NCBI RefSeq assembly: GCF_032191835.1
Contig: NC_083237.1
Coordinates: 1,612,001-1,676,000, forward strand
Length of the DNA: 64,000 nt
DNA from: Heteronotia binoei
Lineage: Eukaryota
Direction of reading: 5' to 3'
Shown here: piece by piece, positions 26,343-32,300 of the stretch
Position numbering within the stretch: the stretch's first letter is position 1
Layout: each line of letters begins with the position of its first letter
Position numbers and translations under genes: made by a program
Notes under the pieces: generated by a model
Told to the model about the DNA's origin: nothing
What the model saw: only the letters and a program-made list of their open reading frames with translations
Databases searched by the model: none

Positions 26343-29300
26343 TCAGATGAGGTCAGCCACATTCAGGGGCATCTCCTCAATGGAGGTGTTGTAGAACGTC
26401 TCGATGTCACGAAGGGTGCGCTTGTCTTCTTCTGTCACCATGTTGATTGCCACACCTTTCCTGCCAAAACGGCCCCCTCGCCCAATCCTGGAGAGAGAGA
26501 GAGAAGAAAGTGAGAGGAGGGGCCGGCCCTTCAGCAAGACAGGCGGGAGAAGGGGGGCCTCCAGCGACCCAGCCCGTGAGAGGCTTCTGGCTCACCTATG
26601 GATGTAGTTCTCACGGTTGGTGGGCAGGTCATAGTTGATAACCAGAGACACCTGCTGCACGTCAATCCCACGAGCCTGGAAGGAAAGAGCTGGAGTTGGC
26701 AACAGTCACCCCCCCGCCCCTGCTGGGGTCTGAGGCTCACCGGGAGCCACACAAGGCTTTTTGCAGAGCAGATGTGTGGGCAGCTGCTGCGACGGGGCCT
26801 GGCGCCACGCTGGTTCCAGCCTTGAGGAAGAGCAGCCTCCTTCAGTGATGTGCCAAGGAGCTACAATCTGCCAACAGTACAGAGCGGACTAGGCAGAGAG
26901 GGAATCTCCTTGGGTGGCAGAGAGGATTCACGCTCCTCGGACTCAAACTCACCAGCAAGTCTGTGGTGATCAAAACACGGCTGGAGCCAGAACGGAACTC
27001 CCGCATGATCACATCTCTCTCCTTTTGGTCCATGTCCCCATGCTGGTGGAAAGAGGACAGAGATTATCTTTGGTCATCTTGACAGTGACGGTTGGCGAGC
27101 ACAGGATTCCACCACACAAACAATTCTCTAATGTGACCCCAGACTTTTTCAGAACCTCTATCATGAGCCATGTGACTCTCTTTTCGTCCAGCATGATGAT
27201 TCCGCAACCAGCAAAAAACAAACGGGCAACCTTTCTAAATTTCCCCTTCCATAACTGAGCCCCTCGGCAAAACCAGACCACCTACAAATCTCTTAAGTGG
27301 GCCTGCGTGGAATCAGCTCTGCTACCGAGCGGCAACCCCGAAGGGGGCTTTCTCAAGGAGCCCCCCGAGCAGCCCCGGCTCTGCCCCTCACTCACCATGG
27401 CCGAGACAGTGAAGTCCCTGGCATGCATCTTCTCTGTCAGCCAGTCCACCTTCCTCCGGGTGTTGATGAAAATGACTGCTTGGGTGATGGTGAGGGTCTC
27501 GTACAGGTCACACAACGTGTCCAGCTTCCACTCCTGGCCCGAGAGAGAAGGATGAGATGCAGAGGGGCAACTCAGCTCCAGGCCTCGCAGGCGACCAGCC
27601 CTCCCCGCTCTCTGCAGTACACCTCAGCAAGGCTTGTCTTCTGGCTGTGACAGCTGCACAGGCAAACTCCCTCGCTTGTCAACCCCCCAACTGCTGGCTG
27701 GGTGATTCCAAGCCCCCTGAAATGCCTTTGGGTTTTGCTGGGAGAAGGAGGCCGACGTCCCAACAAACAAACCGGCAAGGAAAAACTTGCAGCTGTGAGC
27801 CATTAGCGGCAAGCTGCCCTCCCGCCAAGCTTTACAAGGGGACTGCCTCTGGGACCTGCATTTGCCATGGACGAGGCTGGCCCTAGGAAACGTCACCCTG
27901 CTCCTCCTCCCAGCCCCACAGGAGAGCCGGAGCCACTCACCTCTCTCTCCACGTTGATGTAGAACTGCCGGATACCCTCCAAGGTCAGCTCTTCTTTTTT
28001 CACTAGGATTCGAATGGGATCCCTCATGAACTTCTTGGTGACTTCCAAGACATCCATGGGCATGGTGGCAGACAGCAGGACCACCTGGAAGGCAGGCAGA
28101 GATCCTTTGTCTCCCAGCACTGCTCCAATCTACACCTCGCAGAAGACTCACACCGTCTCCCCCACCCCCAGGTCTAACACTTCTCCATCTGACCAAATCT
28201 CCCTTCTCCTAACAGGGGCAGGCCGAGAAGAGACATTCCCCATTGGTCTTGCCCAACCATGGGGAGCCCCCCCCCCGCCCAGTCCGTACCTGTGTGTTTC
28301 CGCTAAGCTTCTGGAATATGTCGTAGATCTGGTCCTTGAACCCCCGACTCAACATCTCGTCTGCCTCATCCAGCACGAACATCTTGATGAACTTGGGTGC
28401 TGCAGAGACAAAGCAAGTGAGCGGCTCCGTGAAGGGAGGAGAGGAGGAGCTGGTTGTGGCCGGAGGAGGGTGAGCCCCGCCGCTGTCCTCAGGCACCTTC
28501 TTAGCTATGATCACTGTGCCCGACACCCCGCAGCCTTTCCCCTGCGCAGCAGAACGCCGGCTGGGAGGAAGGCGGGGCTCGAGGGTTCAGATGACACGCA
28601 TGGGGGTTGATCATCACGGGACAGCAGAGGAGACGCTCAGCTTCTCCGACATTTACAAACTCTCCGTTATTTAGGAAACCCCGGAACCCACACCTTGTTA
28701 GCTGAAGCATGAATGACGGTGTGTTTTAACAGCCTTTAGAATGCCTGGGATGCAGTCTTGCTCAACCTGCTTCCCCAGAAGGCGAGAAGCGCAAGAATCA
28801 AATCAAAGGGGCAAATGTGCTCTAGACGACCCTCTAGGATCCATCGTGAACACATCTGCGAGACGCTGCTCTGAAGACAACAGCCGAGCGAAGGATGAGT
28901 CACTTACACAGGTACCTCCTGTTCAGCATGTCAAAAACCCTGCCGGGGGTCCCAACGATGATATGAGGAGCTTCCATCTGTAGCTTCTGAACCTCCGCGC
29001 GGACGTTGGTCCCACCTATACAGGCGTGGCAGGAAGCCCCCATGTAGTCTCCCAGGGCCATCACCACCTTCTGGATCTAAGAAAAAGATGATATTGGATT
29101 TATATCCCACCCTCCACTCCAAAGAGTCTCAGAGCGGCTCACAATCTCCTTTCCCTTCCTCCCCCACAACAGACACCCTGTGAGGTAGATGAAGATACTG
29201 GATTTATATCCCACCCTCCACTCCGAAGAGTCTCAGAGCGACTCACAATCTCCTTTGCCTTCCTCCCCCACAACAGGCACCCTGTGAGGTAGATGAAAAT

Positions 29301-32300
29301 ATTGGATTTATATCCCGCCCTCCACTCTGAAGAGTCTAAGAGCGGGTCACAATCTTCTTTCCCTCCCCCACCCCAAAACAGACACCCTGTGAGGTAGATG
29401 AAGATATTGGATTTATATCCCGCCCTCCAATCCGAAGAGTCTCAGAGCACCTCACAATCTCATTTCCCTTCCTCCCCCACAACAGACACCCTGTGAGGTA
29501 GATGAAGATATTGGATTTATATCCCGCCCTCCACTCTGAAGAGTCTAAGCGGCTCACAATCTCCTTTACCACCCCCCCACAACAGACACCCTGTGAGGTA
29601 AATGAAGATATTGGATTTATATCCCGCCCTCCACTCCGAAGAGTCTCAGAGCGGCTCACAATCTCCTTTACCTTCCTCCCCCACAACAGACACCCTGTGA
29701 GGTGGGTGGGGCTGAGAGGGCTCTCACAGCAGCTGCCCTTTCAAGGACAACCTCTGCCAGAGTTATGGCTGACCCAAGGCCATTCCAGCAGGTGCAAGTG
29801 GAGGAGTGGGGATTCAAACCTAGTTTTCCCAGATAAGAGTCCGCACACTTAACCACTACACCAAACTGGCTCTCTAATGCAGGTAGAAAGGCAGAAAAGG
29901 GGCCTTGAGGCAGCCTGGCAGAGCAGCTGGGGAGGGGAGCCCCGAAATGAGTGAGTGGAGCTTCCCCCATCCTGCTCGAGGCCTCTCCAGAGTTCTTGTC
30001 TCCCCAGCATGAACCAGCCAACGGCCACAGAAGGACTGCACTGGGATGAATAGGGAGAACTGCTCTACCCCTGCTAGATTTAAGAAGGACACCACCATCA
30101 AGGTGCCTCTTTGCCCAGTTAGCAGGGGGCGAGGGGAGACCAGGAAACAGAAGGCGGGGGCGAGAAAAACATCATGGATTTTGTGGACTGTAAAGAAAAC
30201 AGGGGTACCCCAATTGACAGGGCCTAATTTCCCAGACTCTAACATGAACTGCCTTTAGAGAGCTCCTATGCACACTGAGCACAACGGTGTGCTCAAGCTG
30301 TGCAGAGAAAGGGGAGCTGGGATCGAGGCCCAAGCCCTCTGAGCAAAAGAATCTGACGAGGACCTCCCCCACCCCCCACAGGCAGGATTACGGCACCAGG
30401 TATTCTCTAGTAGGTAGTTTTTCCAACCAAGATTGGTTCCCACATTTCATTAAGGCTAACTCCAGCCATCCAAGGGGAATTAAAGGGGTTGGATAGAATT
30501 GGAGAGTGGATTCAGGGGAATAATATTATTACTAAGGCCAAACAGAAGAGAAATTAGGAGCCAATATCAATTGGTATCAATACGTTCAAGTTTAGAATAT
30601 GGTCCACTCTATTCAAATGGAAGAAACTATTAGGTATGAATTGACACCATTTGAGGAAGGCATTGACAAGAAAGGTTTGCTTTCAAAAGTATATAACTAT
30701 TTAATTGACTCTCTTCATTCACGTCCACCCTCTTATATTAAATGCTGGAATTTAAACTGCCTCAAAGGCTGGAGGAAAGCAATTGGAAAATGATTTGGAA
30801 CTCCCCTTCCATTAAGGCTAAAAGTGTTGGTATTCAACTCCAATGTTTTAAAATGCATTCACTTTGGTATTTAATCCCTGTCACGATGAATAAAATTTCT
30901 AGGGTTGAAAATCCAGATTTTTGGAGGAATTGTAAAACTAAAGGCTCGCCATATCATACGTGGTGGGAATGTCCAACAGTGTCAAATTTTTGGAATAAAC
31001 TGGTAGAACAAATAAAACTTATATTTCATTGAATGCCCACAAGTTCTTGTATTGTGAGAAAGGGAGAAAAGGACTTCTTTCTCTACTTTCTCCATCCCAT
31101 GCATAACCTTTAATCTTGGCAATGTTGGTGATAGCTTGTATAACAATTGCTAAAAATTGGAAACCCCCACGATTGAAATGTGGTTATGAAAAATTATGAG
31201 ACCAATACATAATGGGAAAGACAATGGATAACCCTTTCTTTGAAAATGATACTGATCTACCTATAGATTACAATTTGCTTTGAGCCCCAGTTTTGGAATT
31301 CTTTGGAAATATTTCCTTTTCTGCCTAATAGAAAGAATTATACCCTATTTCTTAATTCTTAGCATATTATGTATTGTTTGTTATATGCATCCAATGATCT
31401 AAATTGGGTTCTCGTATGCTGCATTTATATTTTTATTATTTATTTTCCCTGTGCTTCCCTTTGTATTAGATTCAATAAAATAAAACATTTTTTTTTGTTT
31501 AAAAAGTGCATGATCAGGGAAGGGAAGGTGAGGATACCCAGAGTGCCTTCACAGCACAGAATTAGTGGCCATCCACAACTCACCAGCCACTTAAAGAGTT
31601 AAAAAGCACACCAGTCCCATCGTTTGAAGCTACTTTATCCTAAACCAGATCAGCAGTCCATCGCAATCAGAACTGTCTACTGACTGGCAAGCAGCTCTCC
31701 AGCAGAGAATGCTCTTTGCTGTCATCCACTGCCTGATCCTTAACTGGAGATGCCAGGGATGGAACTTGGGACCTTCTGCAGGCCAAGCGGATGCTCTGCT
31801 GTCCCTGCCCCCCCCTTGCCTCTCACCTGCTGAGCCAGCTCTCTTGTGGGGGCCAGAACAAGTGCCTGGGTGGCCTTCAGGTCTAGCTCGATTTGCTGCA
31901 AGATGGAAATAGCAAAAGTGGCCGTTTTCCCAGTTCCGGACTGGGCTTGGGCAATCACGTCATAACCTGGGAAAGAAAAGGAGAAAAAACCAGATCAGAT
32001 ATCCAGACCGTGCAGGAGATTACTTGACCTGTTCCCCTGCTCCCTAGAAGCACACTGCTGGAACCCCCATGGCTACAGCTGCCATCTCTCTGCAAGACAC
32101 AAGGGGCTGTGAGCACTTCAAAAGGGGCCACTTGGCCCAGTGAGCAGAGAAATGAAGAGATCGGAGTGCTGTGGAAGACTCTGCAAAGGGCATTCTGGGG
32201 CTGTGAGGGACATTTCTTATTCTAAGAATCTGTACAGCATATGTTTTTCAGTTGCCCATTTTATAGGGAGGCTCGTTTTAGAATTATTACTCCATCATAG

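Follow-up and report, generated by a model that had tools for sequence, protein, structure and literature searches.

Analysis of a 64,000-nucleotide (nt) stretch of the Heteronotia binoei genome (RefSeq assembly GCF_032191835.1, contig NC_083237.1, positions 1,612,001 to 1,676,000; the window) showed that a short interspersed element (SINE) of the Squam3B type inserted on the 3′ splice acceptor of exon 5 of the EIF4A1 gene. With a probability of about 85%, this insertion duplicated the target TTAG, exon 5 is now spliced by signals that the SINE supplies, and a tandem array grew later within the element. EIF4A1 is encoded on the minus strand of the window at approximately 26346-35662, and the sequences of the locus are given on that strand. 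Its exon cores were read individually from three-frame translation; all 11 of the 11 exons were open, with canonical AG/GT borders.

The Exon 5 Boundary and Its Empty Site in a Related Squamate

Two candidate acceptors flank the insert, and the letters and coordinates quoted for them in the preliminary description of this locus were all present on the minus strand. The upstream tract, CCCCTTTTCTGCCTTTCTACCTGCATTAG, is an AG-free pyrimidine run that terminates in an AG at 29875-29874. The acceptor in use reads ...AATATCATCTTTTTCTTAG|ATCCAG (also written ...ATCATCTTTTTCTTAG|ATCCAG), with its AG at 29078-29077, and the exon starts in the correct frame at 29076. The insert between the upstream AG and exon 5 extends from 29873 to 29077 and thus measures 797 nt. 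Reading from 29873 gives AGA GCC AGT TTG GTG TAG, a stop (29858-29856) after five codons.

Orthologous DNA was sought by a word search with the exon 5 open reading frame (ORF) among the ORFs of Logan contigs. The informative contig, L006 (Logan SRR13336341, 2699 nt), was reached through the cluster member P0125, whose ORF reads into an intron 5 resembling that of the window. The contigs L001-L005 and L007 came from distant vertebrates and were uninformative for the junction, and L008, from a sauropsid, was of use for the spacing of the small nucleolar RNAs (snoRNAs) only. Exact look-ups of two window ORFs, a 123-aa ORF ending at the TAG at 29858-29856 and a 53-aa exon 5 ORF, returned no match, and the 123-aa intron ORF likewise brought up no relatives when it was used in a word search. 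Judged by its sequence, L006 comes from a related squamate and is orthologous to EIF4A1 of the window. Its high-scoring segment pairs with the window run through introns and exons at 78-88% identity, SNORD10 and SNORA67 lie in the same introns as in the window, and its first 32 nt correspond to the 3′ end of SNORA48.

Intron 4 of L006 ends ...TTTCTACCTGCCCTAG and abuts ATCCAGAAGG without an insert; positions 113-164 read ...GCTGCCTCAAAGGCCCTCTTCCATCTTTCTACCTGCCCTAG and are followed immediately by ATCCAGAAGGTGGTGATGGCC. The flank upstream of the insert in the window (29925-29874) was identical to the last 52 nt of this intron at 43 of 52 positions, without gaps and with the same terminal AG. 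Past the shared AG, the window continues into the SINE and L006 into exon 5. The empty site carries a single CTAG, compared with TTAG at both ends of the insert in the window. Window and L006 thus present a filled site and an orthologous empty site with one copy of the target, the pattern by which a retroposon inserted through target-primed reverse transcription is recognized. These results bear out the earlier proposal that a SINE sits at the exon 5 boundary and has left the ancestral acceptor stranded upstream. The empty site had been forecast as ...CTGCATTAG|ATCCAG, and L006 reads ...CTGCCCTAG|ATCCAG. The duplication, also proposed earlier, was unsafe from the window's letters and was settled only by the empty site, where the motif occurs once.

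The same junction decides against a different placement of the element, in which the SINE entered the native tract some 9 nt upstream of the AG and made no duplication. On that placement, a flanking A and the first G of the SINE would together form the upstream AG, and TTTTCTTAG would be native. The Squam3 consensus does begin with G, and from the window alone this placement is equally tenable. In L006, however, ATCCAG follows at once on the TAG that closes the tract, no additional TTTTCTTAG-like stretch lies between them, and the placement was rejected as highly improbable.

Exon 5 of the window differed from that of L006 at 13 of 168 nt. All of these changes were synonymous (12 at third positions and one at the first position of a Leu codon), and 56 of 56 residues were conserved. 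Because the changes are synonymous only, exon 5 is taken to be still translated and under purifying selection; if so, the AG at 29078-29077 must be used. It is barely credible, against this conservation, that the EIF4A1 copy is decaying after its function passed to a paralogue. A weak-looking acceptor and many decoy sites would fit such decay, but the eleven exons are open with canonical sites and all three intronic snoRNAs have been retained.

Structure and Age of the Insert

The insert was composed of one Squam3B SINE in the sense orientation of EIF4A1, the last 104 nt of which are repeated 5.9 times. It was compared by motif and by eye with the Squam3B consensus (supplement 4 of PMC10702118). 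The tRNA-derived head of Squam3B (GAGAGCCAG...GGTGTAGTGGTTAAG) was present, the window reading GAGAGCCAGTTTGGTGTAGTGGTTAAG from 29874 on. The CORE-like body and the L2-derived 3′ region (...ACCTCACAGGGTGTCTGTTGTGGGG...GGGATAT-AAATCCAA; ...GGGATATAAATCCAA) were also found, followed by a (CTT)n-type tail. The SINE head motif occurred 11 times in the window and the SINE 3′ motif 14 times, where shuffled sequences gave an expectation of 0 for each.

Satellites built from part of a Squam3 SINE, termed sSat3, have been described as a feature of geckos (Vassetzky et al. 2023, PMC10702118). The EIF4A1 array, with a period of 104 and 5.9 copies, falls under their definition of at least four head-to-tail monomers. 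Its unit spans ACCTCACAGG to a few tail repeats, and its start position equals that of sSat3_Gja1a (PMC10702118). The earlier identification of the insert as a SINE therefore holds for the ends and body of the element, but this is not a plain copy: the tandem 104-nt array, the six decoy acceptors and a donor-like AAG|GTAAAG had been overlooked. Squam3 SINEs rarely make target-site duplications (Vassetzky 2021, PMC7983390). The EIF4A1 copy departs from this trait in having TTAG on both sides; the trait is a tendency, and the assignment to Squam3B stands.

The SINE head was 5.2% from the consensus of 14 window copies, a value typical of those copies, and the six array units were 2-7.5% from their unit consensus and 5-12% from each other. 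Because of these distances, the insertion and the array are taken to be old, neither a fresh polymorphism nor a mis-assembly. An estimate made without a calibrated rate would put their age in the region of ten million years or above. Since assemblies often err in tandem arrays, the insert could in principle be an artefact, or a rare or heterozygous allele beside a working allele with the empty site. We consider this very improbable, as mis-assembly makes neither precise SINE ends, nor an in-register tail, nor a TTAG duplication, and units 5-12% apart must have decayed independently for a long time, well beyond the age of a segregating allele.

Splicing Signals Probably Supplied by the SINE

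The stretch ATCATCTTTTTCTT before the AG in use keeps the register of (CTT)n, agreeing with (ATC)(TTC)(TTC)(TTC)TT at 12 of its 14 positions. Other Squam3B copies within the window end ATCTTCTTC..., resembling the tail before exon 5. The present pyrimidine tract thus consists of the SINE tail and the TT that the duplication contributes, in agreement with the earlier suggestion that the tract derives from the tail. Since the first letters of the SINE consensus are themselves G(A), the size of the duplication ranges from 3 to 5 nt. The nearest AG upstream of the acceptor in use stands at a distance of 33 nt, and the branch point would therefore have to fall within the L2-derived end of the SINE, GGGATATAAATCCAATATC.

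The comparison shows the first event of the history: after the split from the L006 lineage, a sense Squam3B SINE retrotransposed into the final bases of intron 4 of EIF4A1, with duplication of TTAG. The later steps are proposed. The downstream TTAG copy would have preserved an AG directly before exon 5, and the (CTT)n-type tail would have rebuilt a pyrimidine tract of 12-14 nt, so that the exon could still be spliced, with a branch point that would by necessity now fall somewhere in GGGATATAAATCCAATATC. Later, the last 104 nt of the SINE would have expanded locally to six tandem units, as is widespread in gecko genomes. Through this growth, the original signals (branch point, tract and AG) would have come to lie 797 nt upstream, with SNORA48 at a distance of 917 nt from the AG in use.

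Several observations weigh against this interpretation. There was no good yUnAy branch point within 40 nt of the acceptor in use, nor in GGGATATAAATCCAATATC. On rough splice-site matrices, the acceptor in use scored 3.2, the weakest in the gene (others, 5.7-13.5) and below five of the decoys. Use of the acceptor at 29076 is deduced from the integrity of the gene, and L006 is the one close relative in the comparison.

Decoy Acceptors and a Possible Poison Exon

Six further AGs lie between the stranded acceptor and the real one. The junctions of the array units read ...CTTCATCTACCTCACAG|GG, and the SINE body adds one CCTCACAG|G. Five of these six decoys scored approximately 7 on the rough matrix, compared with 3.2 for the real site and 2.7 for the stranded acceptor. 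According to a frame table, every decoy would bring in stop codons, among them the TAG of the real acceptor (29079-29077). The stranded acceptor and the six CCTCACAG|G sites would thus act as decoys, the use of which would yield stop-containing transcripts prone to nonsense-mediated decay (NMD).

The proximal acceptor is probably preferred, because only this site defines the normal 169-nt exon beside a strong GTAAGT donor. G-runs inside exons usually silence. The G-runs that follow each decoy would fall inside the would-be exon and may silence the decoys in this way. RNA fold prediction paired each decoy CCUCACAG with the downstream UUGUGGGG; the z-scores of -0.9 to -1.2 were not significant, and the pairing is a hint only.

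An AAG|GTAAAG in the first array unit resembles a donor, with a score of 3.7 on the rough donor matrix compared with 3.3-7.4 for the real donors except that of exon 5, whose GTAAGT scored 1.1. Together with the stranded acceptor it would delimit a cassette of 202 nt. A premature stop more than approximately 50 nt before a later exon junction, the usual NMD arrangement, is found for the TAG at 29858-29856, which has exons 5-11 downstream. The stranded acceptor, alone or with this donor at 29671, could be used at an appreciable level for regulated poison splicing, giving NMD-targeted transcripts that still release SNORA48 and uncouple the snoRNA from eIF4A1 protein. None of the ancestral signals (branch point, tract, AG) has been lost, the stop follows after five codons and precedes six exon junctions, and the donor-like site lies at an exon-sized distance. 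In addition, PMC9394076 cites Lykke-Andersen 2014 for snoRNA host genes as NMD targets. On the other hand, the stranded flank is 83% identical to L006, a value that the neighbouring introns share, so that this one comparison gives nothing that suggests constraint. The production of H/ACA snoRNAs is generally regarded as independent of their position within the intron, and if the output of SNORA48 is position-independent, an uncoupling device would be unneeded. Regulated poison splicing is thus considered unlikely. A lineage-specific version, in which the 202-nt poison exon is used in a regulated manner together with the six-fold decoy array and tunes eIF4A1 output while SNORA48 is released, is quite doubtful; if true, it would be a transposon-born switch for unproductive splicing within a core translation factor.

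snoRNAs Hosted by EIF4A1

Human EIF4A1 hosts SNORA48, SNORD10 and SNORA67 in successive introns (PMC9394076, Fig. 2A legend), and the window showed the same host-gene layout, with SNORA67 under the Rfam gathering score. The SNORA67 orthologue reached 28.5 bits in the window and 32.8 bits in L006 (2049-2190) against a threshold of 45, and its host-intron position was conserved; the Rfam SNORA67 model seems poorly fitted to reptiles.

The distance from snoRNA to acceptor was obtained by subtracting the coordinate of the G in the AG from that of the snoRNA 3′ end. SNORA48 was 120 from the stranded AG and 917 from the AG in use, reproducing the values of the preliminary description. The spacing was 132 in L006 and approximately 109 in L008, which fits the stranded AG and not the AG in use. 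For the other two snoRNAs, spacings of 83-94 had been given; the values obtained were 85 for SNORD10 and 96 for SNORA67.

Table 1. Features of the EIF4A1 locus in the window (positions are those of the window).
Feature	Coordinates	Strand	Description	Evidence
EIF4A1 exon 4	31827..31966	-	Ends ...TRELAQQ at 31827; donor GT 31826-31825	Translation and boundary mapping
SNORA48 (H/ACA snoRNA), EIF4A1 intron 4	29994..30130	-		Rfam RF00554, 56.2 bits vs gathering score 50
Stranded ancestral 3′ splice site	29874..29925	-	Candidate branch point CTCAAG, pyrimidine tract, AG 29875-29874	
Upstream TTAG copy (target-site duplication)	29874..29877	-	3-5 nt depending on placement of the SINE 5′ end	
Squam3B SINE head and body	29704..29873	-	First G possibly 29874, consensus beginning GAGAGCCAG	
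Possible 202-nt poison exon	29672..29873	-	Stranded acceptor to donor-like AAG|GTAAAG (GT 29671-29670); in-frame TAG 29858-29856	Sequence only
Six decoy acceptors CCTCACAG|G	29178..29696	-	First "exon" bases 29694, 29590, 29490, 29386, 29281, 29177	
SINE-derived tandem array (sSat3 type)	29090..29703	-	104-nt unit ACCTCACAGG...AATATCTTCATCT, 5.9 copies, 90% matches	Tandem Repeats Finder
SINE tail ATCATCTTTTTC	29081..29092	-	Pyrimidine tract of the acceptor in use	
Downstream TTAG copy	29077..29080	-	Its AG (29078-29077) is the exon 5 acceptor	
EIF4A1 exon 5	28908..29076	-	169 nt, first base 29076; ends ...NRRYL, then donor GTAAGT	
SNORD10, EIF4A1 intron 5	28485..28622	-		Rfam RF01290, 55.8 bits, above gathering score
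SNORA67-like H/ACA snoRNA, EIF4A1 intron 9	26772..26915	-		28.5 bits vs Rfam threshold 45, E = 0.024

Squam3B Copies and Other Elements of the Window

Four of the 13 Squam3B copies in the window, the EIF4A1 copy included, had pyrimidine-rich 5′ flanks; in the other three, the flank is the CTT/CCTT tail of a further copy to which they are chained. With a (CUU)n end on its RNA, an L2-type element could use the complement of any CTT-like tract for priming, and the acceptor tract CCTTTTCTGCCTTTCT would be a natural target. At 19045-19852 and 38519-39476, two to four Squam3B copies stand head-to-tail; each begins right within the CTT/CCTT tail of the copy before it, and (CCTT)n microsatellite flanks them. 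This arrangement suggests a preference of Squam3B for pyrimidine-repeat targets.

Squam3B copies at 1982-2403, 7895-8244, 19316-19852 and 20516-20873 carry an internal duplication of roughly element positions 36-116 (head end and body), once or twice, and may belong to the longer sub-subfamily Squam3B3 of geckos. Two elements at 42829-42882 and 43678-43731 have the Squam3 3′ region with (TAAA)n ends, like the Squam3A subfamily.

Within EIF4A1 intron 1, a GC-rich, hairpin-like stretch at 34548-34649 was matched on both strands, weakly and below threshold, by several miRNA models unrelated to each other (29 bits at best, E = 0.002) and is most likely a simple inverted repeat. At the distant vertebrate EIF4A1 locus of L002/L003, a called ORF of 371 aa (436-1551) with no Pfam match lies upstream of the exon 2 match.

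Comparison With Known Insertions and Significance

The canine merle allele, in which SINEC_Cf lies where intron 10 of PMEL (SILV) meets exon 11, is the nearest known parallel (PMC6091007, PMC7349775). Both cases combine a SINE at an intron/exon boundary, a simple-repeat tail serving as pyrimidine tract, and competition between the original and the SINE-associated acceptor. The merle SINE is antisense (its tract being oligo-dT from the A-tail), young and polymorphic, and affects a dispensable pigment gene, whereas the EIF4A1 SINE is sense and old and lies in an essential gene. Moreover, the SINE-borne site is the harmful one in merle, giving an in-frame insertion, whereas in EIF4A1 the SINE-borne tract must work and the original site would be the hazard.

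In the exonization of Alu and other SINEs, 3′ splice sites are reportedly born from SINE sequence. EIF4A1 shares with exonization that the SINE supplies tract and AG, and the products of exonization are often stop-containing minor isoforms. Exonization adds an alternative exon deep in an intron, whereas the EIF4A1 SINE would replace the signals of a pre-existing constitutive coding exon. The array itself resembles the gecko sSat3 loci (PMC10702118) in having a unit of central-to-3′ Squam3B with few tail repeats, the ACCTCACAGG start, at least 4 monomers and approximately 90% similarity. The published loci were catalogued genome-wide without a link to gene function, whereas the EIF4A1 array sits on an acceptor and multiplies a cryptic acceptor motif.

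A disease-causing SINE insertion near an acceptor is described for canine FAM161A (PMC3976383). An intronic SINE near the 3′ splice site displaces native signals there, as in EIF4A1; insertions of this type cause exon skipping and disease, whereas the EIF4A1 insertion has long been tolerated. Selection normally purges transposons that insert no more than a few dozen bases from a 3′ splice site, and those near 3′ splice sites known to us are disease or coat-colour alleles. Read from its sequence, the EIF4A1 locus is a clean and datable case in which an essential gene has tolerated that the splicing signals of one of its constitutive exons were replaced.

An insertion on the last intron bases of an essential and highly expressed gene has here persisted long enough for several percent of decay. 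The locus points to a route to such tolerance, in which the acceptor destroyed by a sense SINE is rebuilt from the pyrimidine tail of that SINE and from a target duplication containing the AG. The pyrimidine tract may itself have attracted the SINE, as other copies in the window also lie in (CTT)/(CCTT) tracts. With seven near-equivalent acceptors before one exon, the locus would be a natural test bed for the choice of AG by the spliceosome, and it would also allow a test of whether the position of an H/ACA snoRNA relative to the acceptor matters.

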